Positions 1 through 10,637 are shown, counted from the stretch's first letter. The stretch is DNA of 64,000 nucleotides from Diplonema japonicum (GCA_964019335.1 OZ025700.1:1-64000); one strand, 5' to 3'. Notes: generated by a model not told the origin, from the sequence alone. Program-made: numbers and translations.

Positions 1-474
1 GGGTTTGCGGGTTTGCGGGTTTGCGGGTTTGCGGGTTTGCGGGTTTGCGGGTTTGCGGGTTTGCGGGTTTGCGGGTTTGCGGGTTTGCGGGTTTGCGGGT
101 TTGCGGGTTTGCGGGTTTGCGGGTTTGCGGGTTTGCGGGTTTGCGGGTTTGCGGGTTTGCGGGTTTGCGGGTTTGCGGGTTTGCGGGTTTGCGGGTTTGC
201 GGGTTTGCGGGTTTGCGGGTTTGCGGGTTTGCGGGTTTGCGGGTTTGCGGGTTTGCGGGTTTGCGGGTTTGCGGGTTTGCGGGTTTGCGGGTTTGCGGGT
301 TTGCGGGTTTGGGTTTGCGGGTTTGCGGGTTTGCGGGTTTGCGGGTTTGCGGGTTTGCGGGTTTGCGGGTTTGCGGGTTTGCGGGTTTGCGGGTTTGCGG
401 GTTTGCGGGTTTGCGGGTTTGGGTTTGCGGGTTTGCGGGTATGCGGGGTTTGCGGGTTTGCGGGTTTGCGGGTT
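1..474 (+). repeat. Tandem octamer array (GGGTTTGC)n, about 59 units; telomere-like satellite
   Basis: Perfect repeats run from base 1. Variants (GGGTTT near 305 and 415, GGGTATGC near 437) occur only toward the junction with unique sequence. Confidence 0.97.
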
Positions 475-795
475 CCCTCCTTCTGGGAGGAAACAGAGGG
501 GGGGGAATCCACTTGGGGGGGGTTTGCAAGGGGGGGATTTACAAGAGGGGGGACAGATAAACCATAAATAGAAGAAGCAGAGGAAGGGGCGCTACCCTCT
601 CTCGGGAGTGCACCCTTCCCTTTTTTTTTCTTATCCTCCTCCTGGGAGGGAACAAAGGGGGGGGGATCTACAAGGGGGGGGTTTACAAGGGGGAAATTAC
701 AAGAGGGGGGACAGATAAACAAGAGAAAGAAGAACAAGAAGAAGCGGAGGAAGGGGGGGAAGGGGCGCCTCCCTCTCTCGGGGACACCTCCTTCG
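475..795. repeat. Two imperfect ~165-bp direct repeats at the 3' end of unit A
   Basis: The pattern CCTC..TCTGGGAGG...TTACAAGAGGGGGGACAGATAAAC...GAAGC.GAGGAAGGGG...CCCTCTCTCGGG occurs at about 475-610 and 636-785. Confidence 0.75.
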
Positions 796-1327
796 CACTC
801 TCTTTCCTTCTCCCCACAAACACAGTATTTTTTTTTTCTATTTCCTCCACAGAGGACACAGAGGGGGAGGGGAGGGGCACGGGGCAGCCAACCGTACGCA
901 GGGTGATCGACACCCTGGAGCCCGAAGAACACCCTTCGGGGATGTGGTGGGTCCATTCGTAGCGGGCCTCACCCTCCAGAATGGCCCAGGTGAAGGGAGG
1001 CACCAGGTACTTCGATACCCTGGACCCCTTCTTCAGGACCATCGTGGTCTCTGCGCCGTACGAGAGGATGAGGACCACTGGTCCCAACCTCACGTCGTCG
1101 GTGTGGTGGGCGATTCCACACCCAGGCTCGTATCGATTTACGAGCACCTGGTCTGGGGTGATCCCCAGCCCCGCTGCAGTGGCCACCTCCGCCACCCAAC
1201 CCCTGGCCCCCTCTGGGATCGGGGTGGTGCGGCGCACTTTGGCACGGGCACCCACCCACCTGAAACCAAATTGGAGGGTTTCCCTCCCTTTGTTCCCCGA
1301 AATGGACTCCCACCCCCCCGAGAGCAA
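683..1327 (-). CDS. AlkB-family 2OG-Fe(II) dioxygenase, copy A; likely joined to the upstream MDPRR ORF (ATG 1515) across an A-run indel
   Basis: Motifs: LVNRY (NxY), HTD (HxD), WTHHIP (distal His), RVSITLR (RxxxxxR). The domain spans about 890-1330 and is intronless. Confidence 0.85.
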   Translation of the reverse strand: MLSGGWESISGNKGRETLQFGFRWVGARAKVRRTTPIPEGARGWVAEVATAAGLGITPDQVLVNRYEPGCGIAHHTDDVRLGPVVLILSYGAETTMVLKKGSRVSKYLVPPFTWAILEGEARYEWTHHIPEGCSSGSRVSITLRTVGCPVPLPSPSVSSVEEIEKKNTVFVGRRKESAKEVSPREGGAPSPPSSASSCSSFSCLSVPPLVISPL

Positions 1328-1656
1328 GGTCTCTTTTCTATTTTTTTATGTTTTTTATTATTTTTGACGACATCTAGAGGGGATCTAAGGGGAGGGGAGG
1401 GGTCATACTGCCCGGCCAGATTTCGGTCTGGTCGGGTGGTCGGCTTGGTCGGCGTCTCTCGTAGGCGTTCCTCCTGCGGGCGGCGGTCTCCGACGACGTT
1501 TCGTCTAGGGTCCATTTTTATTTTTTTTTTTTTTGTGTTGAGGGGGGAGGGGATCCTTTGCTAAACGGCAGGCGGGCCGGGCCGAAACAACCCCCCCAGA
1601 CGACGACGAACGGACACCGAGCGGACGCAGCAGGCACCAACAAAAACACAGACGAC

Positions 1657-1695
1657 CAATAAAGTACAGAAACTGTAGCTTTAGAATCGTTGGTT
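1657..1695 (-). ncRNA. Spliced-leader (mini-exon) sequence, 39 nt, genomic copy A
   Basis: The minus strand reads AACCAACGATTCTAAAGCTACAGTTTCTGTACTTTATTG: 39 nt with the euglenozoan core CAGTTTCTGTACT.TATTG and a diplonemid-type AACC start. It is followed by GTCGTC, not by a recognisable SL RNA intron. Confidence 0.93.
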
Positions 1696-1699
1696 TTTT

Positions 1700-1762
1700 A
1701 AAAAGGGGGACTTGAGAAAATAAATAAAAAGGGGGACTTGAGAAAATAAATAAAAAGGGGGA
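1700..1762. repeat. 26-bp tandem repeat AAAAAGGGGGACTTGAGAAAATAAAT (about 2.4 copies); core recurs at about 3447-3465
   Basis: Directly visible in the sequence. Confidence 0.8.
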
Positions 1763-1914
1763 CGGAGAGAGGGGAAACTGGTGGTTGCTCGGTTCTCCAC
1801 TTACCTCAGCCCGTCCCTCGAGCAGGAGTGGCCCCATAGGCTCATCCCCCTCTGATGCCTGTGGCGGGGTTAGGCCCCCCTCAACCTCCGTCTGGACCGT
1901 CCCCTGCGAGATTT

Positions 1915-2485
1915 TTTTGGGAAAAAGGTGAAAAGAAGTTCAAGAAAGTTGGGGGGGAGGGAGGGCTCAGAACTTGAGAGGAAGAGATGGAGGGGGGAAA
2001 AAGAAAAAAGAGAATTAAAAGAAAGAAATAAAAAATTTTTTTGAAAACCTAGAACCCAAACAATCTTTTTCATTTTCTTTCTTTTAAACTTTTAAACTAG
2101 GAAGATTAAAAATTTTCTTTTTTTTTTGAGCAAATAACAATGGGACCCACCCGTGCGAAACTAGGGGGAAGAAACTAAAGGGAGGAGGATATCGGGGTGC
2201 ACGGCGGAGTGAACAAGGGACGGGAAAGGCTTTTTTTATTTACTTTCGTTTCTTTCATGTTCACTGGGAACCACGGAGAGGTAGGGGGGAAAAGTGGTGA
2301 AAAGAAGTTCAAGAAAGTTGGGGGGGAGGGAGGTCAAAACTTGAGAGGAAGAGATGGAGGGGGGGAAAAGAAAAAAGAAAAATAGTTTTTTTTTTTTTTT
2401 TTTTTTAAAACCTAGAACCCATATCAAACAATCTTTTTCATTTTCTTTCTTTTAAACTTTTAAACTAGGAAGATTAAAAATTTTA
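1915..2485. repeat. ~200-bp imperfect direct repeat (about 1915-2115 and 2285-2485)
   Basis: Both copies share GGTGAAAAGAAGTTCAAGAAAGTTGGGGGG...AACCTAGAACCC...TTTAAACTAGGAAGATTAAAAATTTT. Confidence 0.85.
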
Positions 2486-3623
2486 AGATAGAAAGAAAAA
2501 TAAGAAAAAGAAACAACAAAAAAAAAATTTAAAAATAAAACTAAAAATAAAACACAATTTAAAACTAAAATTAAAAATAAAAATAAAAATAAAAATAAGC
2601 TCGATGATTTAAAGGAAGCCGGTTGGGGCACTTTGAATAAAATAAAATTAAAAATAAACTATTCTGTTAACTGAATCGTCCAATACTACCTATAGGCGCT
2701 CTTGCAACGACCACTACAGCCATCGCCAACGTGCCAAAAAATGGGCTAAACTCGCACACTGGTGTGAGCTTCAAGGGAGCTAAACGTTTCAGACATGGCG
2801 TGCCACACCCATAGGCCTCACGACCGGGGAGGGGGACATTTATCTTTCGCCCGTAAGCTAGAGTGCGCATGCATCCCCAGCTCGCTTTGGGAGGTGTTGC
2901 CAACACCTGGGTCGCTTCGCGGTCCGACCTGCTGCCCAATTCAAAGCGCGGTTGCGGTGAATCCAAGCCCCCTAAGCATCGACACGATTAACAAAGGGGT
3001 TTGTTACGCCGGGATATCTTGTTCACCAATGCTCCATACGCCCCCTGTTGCCAGTTCGCCGGATGAGCATACTGCAGGGTCTTCCACTCATCCGTTGCCC
3101 GGTGGGTACCACGAGGAGGTCAGCAACAATTCTATACTTTTGGCCACGTAGGGCCTGTTCTACATTTAGTATAGTCCCACCTGAAAATAAATAAAAATAA
3201 AAGTAAAAATAGAGAGGGAGAAGAGAAGCAGACAATCAATTGCTTTCTTCTCTTTCTTTTTATTCCTTTTTTAGTAATTTAGTAATTTTTTTTTTTTTTC
3301 CCCCTTCCCTAAAGAACGTTTTGACCAAAACATTGCTTAGGGAAAACAAGGAATAAATAAAATAAAAATAAAAATAAAAATAAAATGCATGTATGGGGGA
3401 GCTTTAACGAAAGCATACTAACCCTGTTTCTCTCCCTTTTTTTTTTAAAAAGGGGGACTTGAGAATGTTTTTTTTTTTTTCTTCAAAAGACACACAAGGC
3501 ACGATAAACCTTAAGAGAAAATAAAAATATTCCAAAACAGACAATCAAGTTCCAACCTGGGAGGAAGGCATGGGTTTCTCTTTTTCTTTATGGGAGGGAG
3601 AGGGGAAGAAGAAGAGGCAGAGA

Positions 3624-4045
3624 GGGAGGAGCACTACCTTCTCTCGGGCGTGCTGTCTCTCCCTCTGCCTTTTTTTCCTCCGAAGAGGGTCTGTTTTTCA
3701 CCTCCGTGAGGGTCCCTCTGGAGAGGGCTCTATAAAAGAAAAAGGGGGGGACAAATGGGGGAGGAACACTACCCTCTCTCGGGAGTGCCACCTCTTCCCC
3801 TCTCTCTCTGTTTTCCTCCGAAGAGGGTCTGTTTTTTACCTCCGTGGAGGGTTCCTCTGGAGAGGGCTCTAAAAATGAAAAAGGGGGGGACAAATGGGGG
3901 GAGGAGCACCACCCTCTCTCGGGAGTGCCACCTCTTCCCCTTTCTCTCTATTTTCCTCCGAAGAGGGTCTGTTTTCCTCCGAAGAGGGTTCTAAAAAAAA
4001 AAGGGGGGCGGGTGGGGCACTATCCTCTCTTGGGAGTGCCACCCC
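3624..4045. repeat. 135-140 bp tandem repeat, three copies plus a partial, 3' of AlkB copy B
   Basis: Units start at about 3624, 3759, 3899 and 4011. They share variants of ACCCTCTCTCGGGAGTGC with 594-611. Confidence 0.9.
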
Positions 4046-4750
4046 CCCTTGCCCACAAAAAAGGGGATCTAAAAAAGGGGGTTCGTCTGTTAACCCAGGG
4101 GATGGGTCTTCCTGGGGTGTGCGGGTGAGCTTGGGGCCTACCGCACGCAGGGTGATCGACACCCTGACACCAGTGGACATCCCGGACGGGATGTGGTGCG
4201 TCCACTGGTGTCTCGCTTCACCTTCCAACAGTGCCCATGAGAAGGGGGGCACCAGGTATTTCGCCACCCTGTCCCCCCTCCTCATGACCATTGTGGTCTC
4301 GGCTCCGTACGAGAGGACTAGGACAATCGGTCCCAGCCTCGCGTCGTCCTTGTGGGCGGCAATCCCACAACCAGGTCTGTACTTATTCACAAGTACCTGG
4401 TTGGGGACCACCTTGAGCCCTGCGGCGGCGGCCATCTCCCTCACCCACCCCTTTGCCCCCCCTGGGATGCCGGTGGTGGGGCACACCTTGGCGTCCGTCC
4501 CCTCCCATCGGTGCCCATACTGGAGCGTCTCCCTCCCCGTGTTCCCTGACAGGGCCTCCCACTTCCCGGACAGCAGAGCTTCTGTCTTCAACCCGGGGGG
4601 GTGCTCGCCATCTTTCAGTATCCACCCTTCCCCCTTTTTCTTCTTTTTTTTTTCCTCTTCAACTATGGCAGGGTCGGCTGCGGAGGTCGGGCTTGCGGCA
4701 GGGGCGGCTGCGGCGGTCTCAGTTGCGGCAGGGGCGGCTGCAGCGTTCAA
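3869..4750 (-). CDS. AlkB-family 2OG-Fe(II) dioxygenase, copy B, with Ala-rich linker; likely joined to the MDPRR ORF (ATG 4997) across an A-run indel
   Basis: Motifs: LVNKY, HKD, WTHHIP, RVSITLR. The domain (about 4140-4580) aligns without gaps to copy A. Confidence 0.85.
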   Translation of the reverse strand: MNAAAAPAATETAAAAPAASPTSAADPAIVEEEKKKKKKGEGWILKDGEHPPGLKTEALLSGKWEALSGNTGRETLQYGHRWEGTDAKVCPTTGIPGGAKGWVREMAAAAGLKVVPNQVLVNKYRPGCGIAAHKDDARLGPIVLVLSYGAETTMVMRRGDRVAKYLVPPFSWALLEGEARHQWTHHIPSGMSTGVRVSITLRAVGPKLTRTPQEDPSPGLTDEPPFLDPLFCGQGGVALPREDSAPPAPLFFLEPSSEENRPSSEENREKGEEVALPREGGAPPPICPPLFHF

Positions 4751-5151
4751 GGCAGCAGGGGCGGCTGCGGCGATCGTGGTTGTGTCGGTCTCTATTTGTG
4801 GATTTTTTTATTTTATTACTTTTTTTTTCTAAAGGGGGGTGGGGGGATCTAGGGGCTGGGGGTGGGGATTCATACTGCCCAACCAGATAGTCTGGTTGGG
4901 TCGGCCCTGGCGTCGTGTGCAGCCTGATGGCCTGTCGGGGTTCCTTCTCCCTGCGGTTTGCACGGTCACCTCCTCTTGCGTTCCGTCTTGGATCCATTTT
5001 TTATTTTTTTTTTTTTAAAGTGTGTTGGGGGGAAGGGGATCCTTTCGGTAAGCGGCGGGCAGGCCGACGGGCAAAACAACCCCCCCGGACGACGGCGACG
5101 ACGGACGACGGACGCAGCGGCAAACCCAGGCACCAGCAGAACACGAACGAC

Positions 5152-5189
5152 CAATAAAGTACAGAAACTGTAGCTTTAGAATCGTTGGT
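5152..5189 (-). ncRNA. Spliced-leader sequence, genomic copy B (SL nt 2-39)
   Basis: The minus strand reads ACCAACGATTCTAAAGCTACAGTTTCTGTACTTTATTG, identical to copy A. It is followed by GTCGTT and abuts Ala codons of unit C. Confidence 0.93.
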
Positions 5190-5573
5190 GGCTGCGGCAG
5201 GGGCGGTTGCGGCAGGGGCGGCTGCGGCGATCGGGATGGCAGGGTCGGCTGCCTGGACAGGGTCGGCTGCGGCGTTCAGGGCGGCTGGGGCTGTCGCAGC
5301 CGTCGTGCTTGCGGCTGGGGTGGCCGTGGCTGTAGCAGGGGCGGCTGCTGCTCCCTTGGTTGCGGTCAAAACCACGGTCTCTACTTGTATTTTTTTTAAT
5401 GTAATTTTTTCTAAAGGGGAGTGGGGGGATCTAGGGGGTGGGGATTCATACTGCCCAACCAGATTGCCTGGTTGGGTGGGTCTCGGCGCCGTGTGCTGCG
5501 GGCTGCGGGCTTGCTCCTGCGGGCTGCGGCTGCGGCTGCGGTCACCTCCTCCTGCGAGTCGTCTTGGATCCAT
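5190..5573 (-). mobile_element. Unit C: truncated third MDPRR unit (N-terminus plus Ala-rich linker; no SL, no AlkB)
   Basis: MDPRRLAGGGDR...LVGQYESPPPRSPH.PLEK is homologous to units A and B. The ORF is continuous into the Ala-rich linker and is cut by SL copy B. Confidence 0.7.
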
Positions 5574-5589
5574 TTTTTTTAGAAGGGAA

Positions 5590-6115
5590 CACAAGGACTC
5601 CACGTCGTCCTTCCTCGATTGTTCATACCCCAAGTGTGTACCTATAGTAGCGCACCTGCAATTCTTCCCCCTCACCCCGCACCATGAAGATGAAATCTAG
5701 CGGCCCTTCCCCGCAATGCATGAGAATTCCATCCCTTGGTAAACGTTCTTCTAGAATTCCATCCCCTGCCCCTGAGTTTTCCTATCAGACCCTGCACCTC
5801 CGAAGACAGGCCTTCAGCAGCGGAGAGAGTTCCTCCAGGCCCGTAGTGAGCGTCGCAGCATGTTTCAAATTAATGGAAACCATCCCAATCCAGTCTCGGA
5901 ATACCTTTGTGCGATCTTCACCTCTTGCATTCGGCAGAAGCTCTAGATCAGCAAAGTTGTTATCAAAGATTGCGAAGAAGTCAGAAAGCAGAATCATTCA
6001 AACTGACCAGTGCGCCGCCGGAATGAACTCCTTGTCAATTGTAAACGCTCGAATAAGGACGAGATGTGCCTTCGGGGTGACTGTGCTGGCTGTTGGAGAA
6101 AAGGGCTGTGAGGCG
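5590..6115 (-). pseudogene. Possible decayed coding fragment
   Basis: One frame gives about 175 protein-like codons (..AHLVLIRAFTIDKEFIPAAHWSV*MILLSDFF...RRCRV**ENSG...YYRYTLGV*TIEE..) with four stops. No family recognised. Confidence 0.35.
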
Positions 6116-7667
6116 TGAAACTACGAACACATTTGTTTGGTTTCTTCTGACATGTAATTAGTGAGGAAAGAGAAAAAGAAAAGAAAGAAAAGAAAAAAGA
6201 GACATTTAAAAAGAAGAGGAAGAAAACAAAAGGGATCAAAGGCACAAGGAGGTGAAGAGAAGAAAAAGTTTGCAATAACGGGGAAAAGGTGTTCGACCAA
6301 GAAACCTACCGTCAAGCAAATCAAGAGGAGGGGGGGGGTGAATCAAAAAGGAGTGGTTTGGATTTGGAAGTTTAAAAGATTGATTAGCTTGATGAATCGT
6401 TAAAAGAAATAGTATGTGGCGCACGGGTGTTAATTTTACCTCATACGCCGCCACAACTAGTTCTTTACTTTTTTTTTGAACAATGAAGTTGTTAAAGCAA
6501 AAACAGAGAAAAGAAAATTTAAAAAGCTTTCGCAAAGAAATAATATTCGATATCTCGCAAAAAAGAAAAGGGTGAAAAGTGTGAAAAGTGAGTGCGCTAC
6601 CAATTTCGCTAGACACGTTCCTTAAATGGCATCCTACAAGATAGCCCAATTAAATGGTGGCATCAAGCACACCCTTCATACTGTCTGCAGTACCGCTGAA
6701 GGTAACAAACGTGCGGCAGTCGGTACAGATCTGCCACACCAACGAGTCAAGTCAAACTTATTGTTTAAATGCTCTGAAAAAAATGTGAATGCGGGGTAAA
6801 AAAAGAAAGAGGACGGGGAAAGGGAAATGTGATAACTTCTAGGAAAATGCATACCAAGAAGAAACATGAGCCCAATAAAAAAGAGATTATCTGAGGAAAT
6901 ATAAAATGAAGCCGAAGACGTTCCACTTTTTCTTTTTTTTCCCTCAAGTGCTTCACTCGCTTCACTCAGATAATCATGGGATGAAACGAAGACTCGACAG
7001 CATCCTGCCGCAACCCGAAGAAAAAGTTACCTGTTTTGGATGTACTTCAAATTTCGTGGCGGGAAAACCCGCCGTTCTTTGTTGCCGAGAGGTTGTTCAC
7101 CCGGTTGAAGAAAAAAAAAGATATAACATTAATACATGTTTTCCCTATTTCTGATCCCAATCAGGGTATTTGATACCTCAAAGCAGCGCAGCGTACTAGA
7201 AAATGAACGTTAGCGCTAGGATAAAATAAAAGATTGGTTGCACCGGAGCTTTTGTCTCCAACAGAGGGAAAAAAAAAGGAGGAAAAAGAAAAAAGACATT
7301 TAAAACATCCTGGGGGACGGGGGGAAAGAATAAAAATGTGAGTTACAAAAGGAATTATCTTTGGAGATGCCTTCCTGTTTTCGTCGAGTTCTGCATCTGA
7401 ACCCTTTCTGCAGCGGTTCCCCATATTGTGAGTGATCTTGCCGGCCTTTTTCTCTAACTTGGCAGTTCTATTTCTTCTCTCTTTTGCCCAGTGAGCAAAA
7501 GACAGAACAAAGAGATTCGTTCGTGTCCGCCGTGGTGCACTGCACACACAGGTTCAACAAAAAAACAAAGACAGAGAAAAGGACGTGTGACCAAACAGTT
7601 GCAAGTCAAACGGTTTATAAAAACAGCATGAAAGAAGGGGAAACAGACGAGAAGGGAGAAAAGGAAC

Positions 7668-10637
7668 TTACTCACGATCCACGCAGTTCCAGTTGAACTT
7701 GAAACCGTACGGGCTACCCTGACCGTCTCCGTCACGGGAGCTCTCGAACCTAAGTGAAAAGATGGGAGAATGTTGCAAAAGCATACCTGATGTAGGCAAC
7801 CTGCTCCTGGAAGTCAGTTGTGTTCACGGTCCTGCCTGTGAAGTCTGTTCCGCCACGCGACACACGGATACCAGGCTCAGTGGCGAAGGTCAGGTACTCC
7901 GCGTGCCAGGCAAGGCTGAACCCGAGCCACTCGTACACGGCGTACTGTCCCACTGGGCACTCGACCTTCCAGCAGTAGGTGCTGACGCTGTAGTGCTCGA
8001 TGTAGTTGGAGGTGGTAGGGATGCACGGTGCGGGTGTTGCAGGCGGGGCACACTCGCATCCGGTGCAGTCGCATCCGAACCAGCTTGTAAGGGTCTCACA
8101 GTTGTAGTTGTCAAAGGAGGCCCTGATGGTCCAGTCACATGTCGACCCGAAGCATCCAGACAGCGAGCACTGCGGGTTCGGGTTCGGGGTCAGTGCAGGG
8201 AACGGGATCGGGACAGGGAGTTCAGTCACAGGCGGGGTGTAGTAGTCGTCACAGCTCCAATCGAAGGAGAACCCTCCTGCGGTCACACTCGCGTCAGAGA
8301 TAAACTTCACGATGGCGAACTTTCTAAAGTACATGGCCTCCGGTAGCTCAGAGAAGTTGCCCGACGAGTAGTTTCCGGTGAGCACCCTCTTGTAGTCGCC
8401 TCTGTCGGTCATCCTGATCATGTCGAAGTCCTGCTCGGTGTCTACAAACTTAGGCTGAATCTTGACCCACCTCCTGCACCTCAGCATCCAGCAAAGTTCA
8501 GTACCGTGCGGGTATCCGCCGGTGGGCATGTAGGATATGGTCCCTTCCCTCTGGCGGTACCTGTTGGAGCGCATGAGCATGTTTTGGCAGTTGTCAGAGG
8601 AGCCCCCGAAGTGGGTGTGTGCCAGAGGGAACAGCGTCACAGGATCCCTCACCACTGGCTGCGAGACCTCGGGCTCTTTGCAAGTGTACGAGAAGTTGAG
8701 CGGGATATCGCCTTCAAGCCTTTGGTTCACGAAGGAGATGAAAACGTCACCGTGGAGCTTACGGTCACTCTCGATGTACCCATAGTTGCTCATCTGCACC
8801 TTCGACTTCACCTCAGTGACGTTGATGTACAGCCTGTGGTTGTCATAAAATAAACAACAAAATACATACCTGTAGTATTGGGCGTTGGCAGTGATCCACT
8901 TCACATCCACCTGCACGATACCCTTGCACTTGATCGACCAGCACGCGCTGTTAGTGGTCTCTGATCCGTTGCCGAGGGACAGGTAGTAGCCGCTGCCAGA
9001 CGGACCGGTGAGTGTCTCGGTGTGGGTTCCTTCGGGGCACAACACGCGGTCAACCACCTCAGGCACGTCCTGGTAGGAAACGACGCTCCCATCGCAGGGG
9101 ATGCGCAAGACGAGGTTCTGGTCGAACTGCCTCAGGGGTGACAAGAGGTTTCTGTGAGCAGTCTCGACGAGGTAGGCCCTGACGGAGGCGGGGGTGGCCT
9201 GCGGGCGGTCAGTCAGGTATGCGGCGGCAGCCGCGGACACGTGAGGTGCGGCCATCGAGGTACCGCTCCTGTTGCGGTAGGCGCTTGTGTTCGCAATGTC
9301 AGCGGACCACACCTGGAACCCAGGGGCGTACAAAGTAACACACTTTCCGTAGCTAGACCACTGGGGGTTGTAGTTCACGTCGTGGAGCCCCACAGTGATG
9401 GAGCCTGATGCACCAGACGGCGAGTACTCGCATGAAGGCTCGTCTCCGTTTCCTGCAGCGGAAACAATGACGACACCAGCGCGTGCTGCGGCGTTCACGG
9501 CCTCGTTCAGAAGAGTAGACCCAAAGAACTGGATGGACATGTTGATGATACTGGGCCTGCCTCTGGCCTTCCTCGACTCTACGACGAACTGGATTGCCTC
9601 GGCAACGGACTGCTTGTTCGTGTTTCCGTCACGAGCAATTCTCACGGCCACGACGGTTGCGGACTTGGCCACACCGTTGTACTTTCCTGCAATTGTGGCG
9701 GCGATGTGGGTTCCGTGGCCAGTGTCGTCTTCGTTCAGGTTGTCGACAAGGTTGGCACCCCACATGCACTTGTCCTGCTGGAACTCCTCGTGATCGCACT
9801 TGATACCTGAAACAAGAATTTGAGAAAGATCTAAAAAGACTTCATACCGGTATCAAGGATGTACACATCAACTCCAAGACCCCACCTGGCGTCGTGCACG
9901 TAGGTGTCCCTGTCAGGGTTCTTGGGGTCCTGCGTCATGGCGGACAGGTGCCAGGTGAGGTTGTCGGTCTGGGTGTCAGGGCACTCAAGGGTGACCTCAT
10001 TGACGGGGATGCTCAAAGCAGCCTCGGCCTCTTTGGCGGTCACGTGGCCCCACCTGTAAGTCTGGATAAGCTTAGCCTGCTCCTCCGTTAACAGGAACTT
10101 TCCAGTGTACACGCCCTTCTCCGAGTCGTACCAGAAATCAGCAGGCCATGTGATACCACGGCGGAGAACCCAGTACTGGAAGTGTCTCGAGCAACCAGGC
10201 CAGTGCGAGGACAGGGTCACCCAGTACTCAGTCGCCAGGTCATCATTGCCCCAATCGCTCTCGTCGCTGCTGTCGCTGTCGCTGCTGCTGTCGCTGTCGC
10301 TGCTGCTGTCGCTGTCGCTGCTGCTGTCGCTGTCACTGCTGTCGCTGCTCTGGATCTTCCCCTCGTCGTTGGTCTCGAAGTAGTCGAGGAAAGGGTGCTG
10401 CTTTGCCTCTTCCAACTGCTTGTCGGTCAACTTCAGCGCAACAGCCTTGAAGTCATCGATCACGATCACGCCAGTGGACTTCGGTCCTGGGTTGATGGTC
10501 CCCTTCTGAAGGGCCCACATCTTCATAGATTGAAGGTCTTCGTCTGTGCATTCCTTCTTCAAGACGGCCAAGTAAGACGTCTGAGCCTGCACATCAAGTG
10601 CAAAGAAGCATGCTCCCAAGAGGAACAAGGTCCTCAT
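7668..10637 (-). CDS. Secreted subtilisin-like S8 serine protease with I9-like prodomain, Ser/Asp repeat and C-terminal CUB-like domains
   Basis: Signal peptide plus triad motifs ILDTG, GHGTHIA and SGTSMAAPHV, and oxyanion AAGN. CUB-like segment FVDTEQDFD...FISDASVTAGGF. GT-AG introns at 9807-9847 (41 nt), 8834-8869 (36 nt) and 7750-7786 (37 nt); spliced end ..FKFNWNCVDRE*. Confidence 0.92.
10258..10350 (-). repeat. Coding 18-nt microsatellite encoding (SSSDSD)n
   Basis: Repeated GCTGCTGTCGCTGTCGCT. Confidence 0.9.

Follow-up and report, generated by a model that had tools for sequence, protein, structure and literature searches.

The terminal array of contig 53

We analyzed the first 64,000 bases of contig 53 in a 62.5-Mb, 132-contig assembly of Diplonema japonicum (GCA_964019335.1, OZ025700.1:1-64000); this whole stretch is called the window, and coordinates refer to it unless another locus is named. 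At its outer edge, over 475-5573, minus-strand units bearing spliced leader (SL) and AlkB sequences are chained head-to-tail, with two complete SL exons and two AlkB open reading frames (ORFs) among them. Bases 1-474 are an array of (GGGTTTGC)n (period 8, 59.6 copies, 97% matches by Tandem Repeats Finder), here called the end repeat, which caps the broken outermost unit, unit A. On the evidence set out below, positions 1-5582 are very probably a repeat-capped chromosome end made of four dead head-to-tail copies (C, B, X and A) of a telomere-repeat-associated retrotransposon without long terminal repeats (non-LTR).

The SL exon, ACCAACGATTCTAAAGCTACAGTTTCTGTACTTTATTG, is of the euglenozoan type and occurs as exact minus-strand copies at 5189-5152 and 1694-1657; its 22-nt core has two exact matches in the window versus zero expected by chance. 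Unit A (475-1695, minus strand) starts with the SL (1657-1694/5) and a type-1 leader of 141 nt (1516-1656), followed by an ORF that begins MDPRR (1138-1515) and an AlkB ORF (683-1327). A short internal deletion and a frameshift follow the MDPRR ORF, and the outer limit at 475 lies inside coding repeats, where the junction with the end repeats reads ...GGAGGG/AACCCGCAAACC (a slash within a sequence marks a joint). The 5' part of unit A, including the leader, is 99% identical to the intact copy L064 described below; its AlkB part matches L064 at only 74% in DNA. The AlkB protein of unit A is identical to that of a second family, found on contig 24, and its AlkB core is the core of that family. 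Inward of unit A lies unit X (1696-3445, minus strand), a 5'-truncated copy consisting of 3' untranslated region (UTR) only, with terminal 26-nt repeats at 1699-1763. The short A run at the end of unit X adjoins the SL of unit A, and positions 1694-1744 are 100% identical to the 3' terminus of L064. Pieces of unit X also match DNA flanking other copies and the 3' part of the contig 24 units.

Unit B (3446-5189, minus strand) has its SL at 5152-5189, a type-2 leader of 154 nt (4998-5151), an MDPRR ORF (4719-4997) and an AlkB ORF (3869-4750). A frameshift follows the MDPRR ORF, and an Ala-rich linker lies in the same ORF as AlkB (3869-4750). A 140-bp coding repeat is present in 2.6 copies (3624-3975). 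The 18-nt motif ACCCTCTCTCGGGAGTGC, which occurs five times at two or fewer mismatches versus 0.05 expected, is part of this repeat. When aligned to L064, unit B matches reference positions 47-1532 and then 9168-9347: an internal deletion of ~7.6 kb has removed the OTU, reverse transcriptase (RT) and endonuclease regions, leaving as the 3' part the last ~180 nt of the 3' UTR (3446-3619) and an A10 tail. Unit C (5190-5582, minus strand) is 5'-truncated ~9 nt ahead of its ATG (5573) and holds an MDPRR N-terminus and the Ala-rich linker; its DNA weakly resembles that of the L064 N-terminal region, and it breaks off within the linker, at the start of the unit B SL. Because the MDPRR and AlkB ORFs of units A and B are in different frames, both copies are broken, and we conclude that all four units are dead copies.

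An earlier note on this sequence had described three minus-strand units, A, B and a truncated C. All three were recovered, but the count was incomplete since unit X had been overlooked. Much of its anatomy stands: A and B are each headed by an SL exon and a GC-rich leader, three MDPRR N-termini are present on the minus strand (the third from 5573), and the units adjoin a telomere-like array. The two AlkB domains were likewise confirmed, with PF13532 scoring 44.5 and 53.5 bits in the window ORFs against a cut-off of 31.2. The 3' repeats with a shared motif that the note listed exist as well, but they are coding, and in intact copies they lie inside a polyprotein.

The intact element and its polyprotein

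A six-frame search of the genome with the unit B AlkB ORF returned 150 matches, many of them in open frames of 1,500-3,005 aa. The intact copy L064 (contig 9, bases 1-10000) has a single ORF of 2,866 codons at 1356-9956 on the minus strand, with the Pfam domains AlkB (PF13532, aa 228-361), OTU (PF02338, aa 1004-1109) and RT (PF00078, aa 1509-1712). Intact copies start with a 38/39-nt SL exon and a 140-155-nt leader, which are followed by one ORF of ~2,800 aa. The N-terminal part of this ORF runs from MDPRR through the Ala-rich linker, an AlkB-type Fe/2-oxoglutarate dioxygenase, 45-aa repeats (which the 3' repeats of the note encode) and a basic region to C2H2-like fingers. Next come an OTU cysteine protease/deubiquitinase, the RT, a CCHC motif with an RHD..E..RPAD..D restriction-like endonuclease, and a C-terminal region. 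The 3' side consists of a 0.7-kb 3' UTR and the 26-nt repeats, closed by a poly(A) tail of 6 to ~50 nt. From SL to poly(A), L064 measures ~9.3 kb, and the unit of the tandem array formed by the second family measures 10,659 bp.

The RT domain was recognized by PF00078 with E-values of 3e-16 in L064 and 8e-19 in family 2, and the only RT matches in a PDB search were R2 proteins (3e-7); the OTU domain matched OTUD5 and OTUD3. A search with the RT-endonuclease piece gave 562 homologues, the best listed of which were 30-40% identical over nearly the full length. Using a regular expression, we found the endonuclease motif C-x4-C-x10-H-x3-C-x6-RHD-x19-E-x10-RPAD-x15-D at aa 1989-2068 of L064, and an equivalent motif in family 2 and in the protein P0003. 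A CCHC plus PD-(D/E)XK endonuclease pattern is quoted for SLACS, CRE and MoTeR (PMC12857005), and the L064 motif follows the SLACS/CRE pattern with slightly different spacing. PF02338 scored 46.7 bits in family 1, to which the body of L064 belongs, and 42.5 bits in family 2 (cut-off 23.3); the OTU catalytic pattern DGNCMFHA...HY was matched in family 1 only, the family 2 and Diplonema papillatum proteins being missed by the pattern. No usable match to the C-terminal 397 aa came from the Atlas, and NCBIfam gave nothing beyond a weak group-II RT match. The 5' and 3' ends of the element are unrelated in sequence, and there are no long terminal repeats. Taken together, we conclude that the element, judged by its predicted domains, is an autonomous non-LTR retrotransposon of the group with a restriction-like endonuclease (R2/CRE/NeSL/R4/Hero), with the RT of a long interspersed nuclear element (LINE), a downstream CCHC and restriction-like endonuclease, poly(A) and 5' truncation. 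The endonuclease motif and automatic NCBI names together suggest membership in the CRE clade.

The genome contains several families of the element. At least 48 RT matches had 97-100% identity, and the RT defined two further families at 46-47% identity. Family 2, the contig 24 tandem array, has an RT 47% identical to that of family 1, the same three Pfam domains and the endonuclease motif; the third family (RT 46%) was found on contigs 18, 31 and 116. L064 itself joins a type-1 leader to a family-1 body. At the start of contig 24 (C24:1-46000; L061, L062, L063 and L067), three family-2 units were exactly 10,659 bp apart and a fourth lay 10,583 bp further on. The joints between them read identically (...CGGAAAAAAAAACT/ACCAACG...), and the contig starts inside a unit without an end repeat. 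This array looks like the product of DNA-level tandem duplication or of repeated template jumping.

The earlier note had read the units as a non-autonomous family, with AlkB as sole enzyme, that moves as trans-spliced mRNA. The family is indeed retro-mobilized, with more than 100 copies, variable poly(A) tails and 5' truncations across the genome, far beyond the window copies. Its RT is also absent from the window, as the note had stated: all 63 listed RT matches lie elsewhere, and those on contig 53 are at 499-523 kb only. Nonetheless, intact copies hold an RT and a restriction-like endonuclease, as well as OTU, in the ~2,800-aa polyprotein, so neither the non-autonomous label nor AlkB as sole enzyme held up. 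An AlkB-only lineage mobilized in trans could still exist beside the intact one, for unit B, whose AlkB-only body is flanked by both element ends (the SL and an A10 tail), could have been copied from a deleted RNA, and the middle of the element is missing from several further copies. We surveyed deletion joints at 30 loci sampled through AlkB, with L064 as reference. Most copies ran on into the full polyprotein, and the deletion joints were all different (1532>9168 in unit B, and 1453>8870, 2188>8923 and 2132>7460, in L064 coordinates); the unit B joint was not met again among the 30 loci, and no joint was held in common. Because the breakpoints differ among the loci sampled, we read the deletions as accidents rather than as a propagating non-autonomous lineage of the RIME/NARTc type. 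With the N-terminus and AlkB of unit B out of frame as well, we consider a separate AlkB-only family highly improbable.

The AlkB domain itself is well preserved. The HxD...H metal triad (HKD or HTD plus the second His) and the RxSxTxR motif (RVSITLR) were intact in the 41 copies sampled, and the catalytic residues aligned with the ligands of ALKBH8, the best PDB match by sequence. An AlphaFold (AF2) model of the window AlkB had a predicted local distance difference test (pLDDT) score of 91, and the Foldseek matches listed (ALKBH6, ALKBH3, NMAD-1, ALKBH5, ALKBH8 and E. coli AlkB) were all AlkB-family proteins with template modeling (TM) scores of 0.7-0.8. When families 1 and 2 are compared, no other segment of the protein is as well conserved as AlkB (72% amino acid identity), and the ratio of nonsynonymous to synonymous substitution rates (dN/dS) was 0.26 in the AlkB core (dS 0.79) and likewise 0.26 in the RT core. 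No match came from a word-index search that compared the AlkB domain with proteins of similar length. An exhaustive HMMER search found distant relatives only, at no more than 40% identity (best E 7e-16), mostly small proteins of ~180 aa together with D. papillatum element proteins. We conclude that the AlkB domain is genuine and conserved, with its predicted catalytic residues intact.

The closest proteins are from D. papillatum. In two of these, of 2,635 and 1,964 aa, AlkB, OTU and RT follow one another as in L064, and both carry the automatic NCBI name "SLACS 132 kDa protein"; the longer (P0278) is 34% identical over 1,353 aa. Of the three domains, just AlkB and OTU appear in a partial protein of 1,495 aa (P0157/KAJ9446222.1), whose annotation is that of an ALKBH8-type tRNA methyltransferase. 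The same annotation is attached to a 644-aa protein (P0146/KAJ9439924.1) with the same kind of AlkB domain. In a related element, P0002 (2,324 aa), a USP/UCH domain (PF00443) C-terminal of the RT takes the place of OTU, suggesting that deubiquitination, and not polyprotein cleavage, is the selected activity.

In line with an orchid Gypsy AlkB (PMC9289625), the domain would most likely remove base methylations that block or mark the element's long RNA (or cDNA), and the OTU domain would most likely remove ubiquitin. A narrower proposal is that AlkB is there because of the SL and the template length, clearing RT-blocking methylations so that a ~10-kb mRNA can be copied to the first SL nucleotide. 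Candidate marks would be m1A, m3C and m6A at sites along the template, to which cap-4-like m6,6A or m3U/m3C on the first SL nucleotides might be added. SL-headed sequences without AlkB also occur (another long ORF, seen in its first 489 aa, and a GH6 gene), which weakens the idea that AlkB is needed in cis for SL copying, and we regard this proposal as rather doubtful.

Spliced leaders and chromosome ends

The 22-nt SL core had 228 matches in the genome. Leaders stood directly behind an SL in 76/79 cases for type 2 and 25/26 for type 1, together 101/105, and a genome search with the leaders found no SL-less copy with an intact leader. In contrast to this constancy, the DNA upstream of the SL varied by copy and was end repeat, poly(A) or the ORF sequence of another copy. 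Shorter leaders were joined as SL/CAAAGGATCC or SL/GATCCCC, and in full leaders both of these points follow an AG (contexts ...GTTTAG/CAAAGG and ...CGAAAG/GATCC). In addition, four copies had a full SL followed by TTTCTGTACTTTATTG and the leader, which is the product expected if trans-splicing used the CAG inside a hard-wired SL. The variant junctions after AG and the re-splicing inside the SL indicate that trans-spliced mRNA gets copied, so that DNA copies begin with the SL because this mRNA is reverse-transcribed. The suggestion in the earlier note that the units travel as trans-spliced mRNA thus gained support. The full leader starts with GT and ends with AG, and the SL/GATCC form could therefore equally result from cis-splicing.

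Apparently genuine SL RNA genes were located at L029:1395-1940 (minus strand; C15:~779080-779453), as two tandem copies 352 bp apart. They have a conserved upstream block (...GGTYCGGGAGGTTA), an intron (GTACCCAATC... / GTACCCAATCTGATCC...) and a T-run terminator, and share with the element leader the exon and the following GT, nothing else. Because the DNA upstream of the element SL is unrelated to theirs and the intron differs, the element SL is neither an SL gene nor a remnant of a target. Derivation of the leader from the SL RNA intron was likewise rejected. The contig 15 genes are within ~2 kb of element copies near the right contig end, and a third locus with the SL-gene upstream block is on contig 4 (L011).

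A complete SL was also hard-wired before a cellular gene leader, SL/GGTGGTGGGGATAAC..., at no fewer than three loci: L020:1-681 (minus strand; C10:536456), L002 (C1:890272) and L006 (C3:59839). At L020 the SL leads into a GH6 glycoside hydrolase (PF01341, 2.6e-15), which suggests that this family of carbohydrate-active enzyme (CAZyme) genes was spread by retroposition of trans-spliced mRNA. Since sequences outside the element are SL-headed too, SL copying is a general outcome of retroposition in this genome. Locus L004 (C2:150573) is of another kind: an SL exon and ~90 nt of genuine SL RNA intron, without the T-run, run into a 493-aa ORF without a Pfam match, and the upstream flank is unlike that of genuine SL RNA genes. 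Unspliced SL RNA may have been retro-copied here and joined to another sequence.

The position and orientation of the copies tie them to chromosome ends. We found the end repeat at 13/20 sampled ends of chromosome-size contigs (the window, L012, L057, L064, L068, L069, L071-L073, L075-L077 and L080), always with the G-rich GGGTTTGC strand 5' at the terminus. The 3'-ending strand is thus (CCCGCAAA)n, the opposite of canonical telomeres. Among minus-strand RT matches, 32/36 lay no more than 35 kb from the first base of the contig, and plus-strand RT matches were at the far contig ends (checked on contigs 16 and 24); leader matches showed the same pattern. In every case the sense strand points to the contig end and is collinear with CCCGCAAA. 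Complete 3' ends had the form (CAAGTCCCCCTTTTTATTTATTTTCT)n CAAGTCCCCCTTTTT with a tail of 6 to ~50 A, after which came (CCCGCAAA)n, the next SL or other DNA. End repeats immediately preceded the SL or followed the poly(A), as telomere-repeat targeting predicts, and no sign of SL-gene targeting was seen. They were also joined at arbitrary points of the SL, leader or ORF, with varying phase. Some ends were cut inside the SL or just past the first few codons of the ORF and carried a repeat cap, as in ...AAAAAAACCAA/CGCAAACCC, ...GTACTTTAT/CCCGCAAA and ATGGATCCAAGACG/ACCCGCAAA (L080, C40:1-600; L024/L025, right end of contig 11; L012, C5:1-2036), and we read these ends as snapshots of terminal erosion and healing. 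That repeats are added de novo, in varying phase, to broken element sense strands argues that the sense strand is the one extended.

A TERT-like gene is present (PF12009, 28.4 bits; G000:C41:533974-534300; open frame of 1,086 aa), and its telomerase RNA template should contain UUUGCGGG. A wider and likewise doubtful version of the template-cleaning proposal would make the elements and a telomerase-like (CCCGCAAA)n addition one composite chromosome-end system, with a polarity opposite to that of every canonical telomere. We found no paper on a diplonemid telomere sequence, and a literature search for the octamer returned primer noise only.

These observations can be joined in a model. The element RNA would be trans-spliced, as are all mRNAs of this organism, and the RT would copy it to the first nucleotide, so that the SL enters the DNA copy. 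Integration would be target-primed at a nick in the G-rich end-repeat strand, which would put the sense strand on the C-rich strand and point its 3' end at the terminus. On reaching the 5' end of one RNA, the RT would at times jump to another RNA as template, and this would yield poly(A)/SL and ORF/SL joints. As the chromosome end erodes, the outermost copy would lose sequence from the 3' side and then be healed by fresh end repeats, a state that unit A would represent. Poly(A)/SL joints without an intervening repeat were found at window 1696/1695 and at L005, L033 and L065. They fit end-to-end template jumping, which is known for the R2 RT; the alternative is tandem duplication.

Several points weigh against this model. 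Three joints, SL/GCCCGG, SL/CCTGTC and SL/GCCTGC, do not follow an AG and have 1-3 nt of microhomology to the SL end; they may be microhomology deletions or template switches. Furthermore, 96% of copies share the exact SL/GTCGT joint and no SL-less master copy was found, so each cycle would either restore the SL by splicing or pass on an inherited SL whose transcription starts at its first base. The exact joint may have been kept by DNA-level spread, by a small number of master copies or by transcripts that begin at SL nucleotide 1. We infer the nicked strand and the template jumps, the substrates of AlkB and OTU are predicted ones, and so are transcription, the RNA 5' end and any present activity. 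Six public runs (in contig form) cover the whole stretch, and the apparent joints in them involve A-runs or 21-24 nt of SL and are untrustworthy; in run X3 the depth on the SL was 100-1000x that of the body, which fits RNA and proves nothing about the element. Finally, DNA-level exchange between ends may supply part of the copy number, as the contig 24 array with its 10,659-bp period and identical joints illustrates.

Taken further, this last point becomes an alternative, in which the chain arose mainly by subtelomere duplication and recombination (break-induced replication, unequal crossing-over) from a few old insertions, with little or no retrotransposition today. Besides the perfect contig 24 array, it would account for mosaic copies (unit A, with an L064-like 5' part and a family-2 AlkB, and L064, with its type-1 leader and family-1 body) and for RT copies that are 97-100% identical. 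However, poly(A) lengths vary independently from 6 to ~50, SL junctions and upstream flanks are many and different, copies are 5'-truncated, the re-spliced SL forms need an RNA step, and there is purifying selection between families. We therefore give it little credence as the main origin of the chain. It is hardly credible that the SL and leader are SL RNA genes or their remains and the element a SLACS/CZAR-type insertion with the SL part of its target: the closest named relatives, SLACS, CZAR and CRE, do insert into SL RNA genes, and a GT follows the SL as in an SL RNA gene, but an end repeat, poly(A) or ORF stands upstream of the hard-wired SLs in place of a conserved SL-gene promoter, the intron, upstream block and T-run of the contig 15 genes are unlike the leader beyond exon and GT, Rfam has no match in the window, and the cellular GH6 gene also has SL-headed copies.

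One feature of the array lies outside the element family. Within unit X, a G+C-rich dispersed repeat of 525 bp (2659-3183, minus strand), resembling a short interspersed nuclear element (SINE), forms an insert that is absent from the homologous L053 stretch. It had 41 genomic matches at 85-100% identity, many full length and many 5'-truncated with a common 3' end. The 525-bp repeat gave no Rfam match and no fold signal (z = 0.87). Its behavior suggests a SINE or other non-autonomous retroposon. In run X3, contig depth over the repeat was much higher than over the surrounding element. Rfam at the gathering threshold had no match over the whole window, and at E < 0.1 only chance matches to low-complexity sequence over 1700-3500.

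Comparison with known systems

With AlkB, OTU, RT and endonuclease in one polyprotein behind an SL, the element is placed among the telomere-targeted, endonuclease-bearing LINEs. As the earlier note had supposed, we found no description of this make-up: a literature search returned AlkB in LTR elements and viruses only, and no SL-headed retrotransposons in Euglenozoa. If the interpretation is correct, this would be the first demonstration of an AlkB dioxygenase encoded by a LINE-type element and a further independent "methyl eraser" of a replicon after plant RNA viruses and orchid Gypsy elements, which would suggest that RNA methylation is widely contested between retroelements and their hosts; the OTU or USP-type domains of related elements point likewise to ubiquitin. 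It would also bear on D. papillatum, whose genome paper gives SLACS-like RTs and AlkB homologues separately and reads a "dozen AlkB-type genes" as host demethylation machinery (PMC10161547). Some of these genes may be transposon domains. The hard-wired SL and its re-spliced forms would serve as a built-in tag of retroposition in diplonemids, as the relict SL does in dinoflagellates, and this tag would mark the GH6 glycoside hydrolase family as spread by retroposition. In addition, the elements offer a handle on chromosome ends with a seemingly inverted repeat polarity.

A close parallel is found in elements of fungal telomeres. MoTeR1 (Magnaporthe), FoTeR (Fusarium) and Cnl1 (Cryptococcus) are grouped with SLACS, CRE1/2 and CZAR in the FoTeR paper (PMC12857005). 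Like these three, the diplonemid element has one RT ORF in which a CCHC and RHD..E..R(P)AD..D/E restriction-like endonuclease follows the RT, and its copies lie in telomere repeats, head-to-tail and in a single orientation, with asymmetric junctions and no recognizable target duplication. The 5' end of FoTeR/MoTeR faces the terminus of a canonical telomere (PMC12857005), and from this orientation we infer that their sense strand also runs with the C-rich repeat strand. The relation of element to repeat is thus shared; it is the end repeat whose polarity is reversed in the diplonemid, so that there the terminus is faced by the 3' end of the element. It further differs in its euglenozoan host, in starting with the host SL exon, and in an ORF two to three times longer, with AlkB, OTU and a long C-terminal region.

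With SLACS, CZAR and CRE1-2 of trypanosomatids the element shares a host within Euglenozoa, the type of endonuclease motif (PMC12857005) and a link to the SL. SLACS, unlike the diplonemid element, is not known to carry AlkB or OTU. SLACS-type elements interrupt SL RNA genes, and the SL there belongs to the target. In contrast, a complete SL heads the diplonemid element whatever lies upstream, and its targets are end repeats.

Replicons that encode their own AlkB-type dioxygenase as a proposed RNA methyl eraser are known among plant RNA viruses and orchid Ty3/Gypsy elements, and the orchid m6A demethylase ORF has been shown to remove methyl marks from the element's own RNA (PMC9289625). The orchid elements are of the LTR type, with a separate AlkB ORF closest to ALKBH5, whereas the diplonemid element is non-LTR, with AlkB fused N-terminal to the RT polyprotein and closest to ALKBH8 by sequence and to ALKBH6/ALKBH3 by fold. 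A DNA-encoded SL at the 5' end of retro-copied mRNAs has its precedent in the relict-SL retrogenes, or "mRNA recycling", of dinoflagellates (PMC6050394, PMC12014239, PMC5585692). In both groups a partial SL stands behind a full SL after repeat rounds, since the SL contains an AG acceptor. The dinoflagellate cases are cellular genes, whereas in this diplonemid the SL heads an autonomous retrotransposon as well as at least one cellular gene, GH6.

LINEs in head-to-tail arrays at chromosome ends are also represented by HeT-A/TART/TAHRE of Drosophila and TRAS/SART of Bombyx, the latter inserting in a fixed orientation into telomerase-made repeats. These elements belong to clades of the apurinic/apyrimidinic endonuclease (APE) type (jockey and R1) and are not known to carry SL, AlkB or OTU. 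The Drosophila elements replace telomerase, whereas the diplonemid genome has a TERT-like gene.

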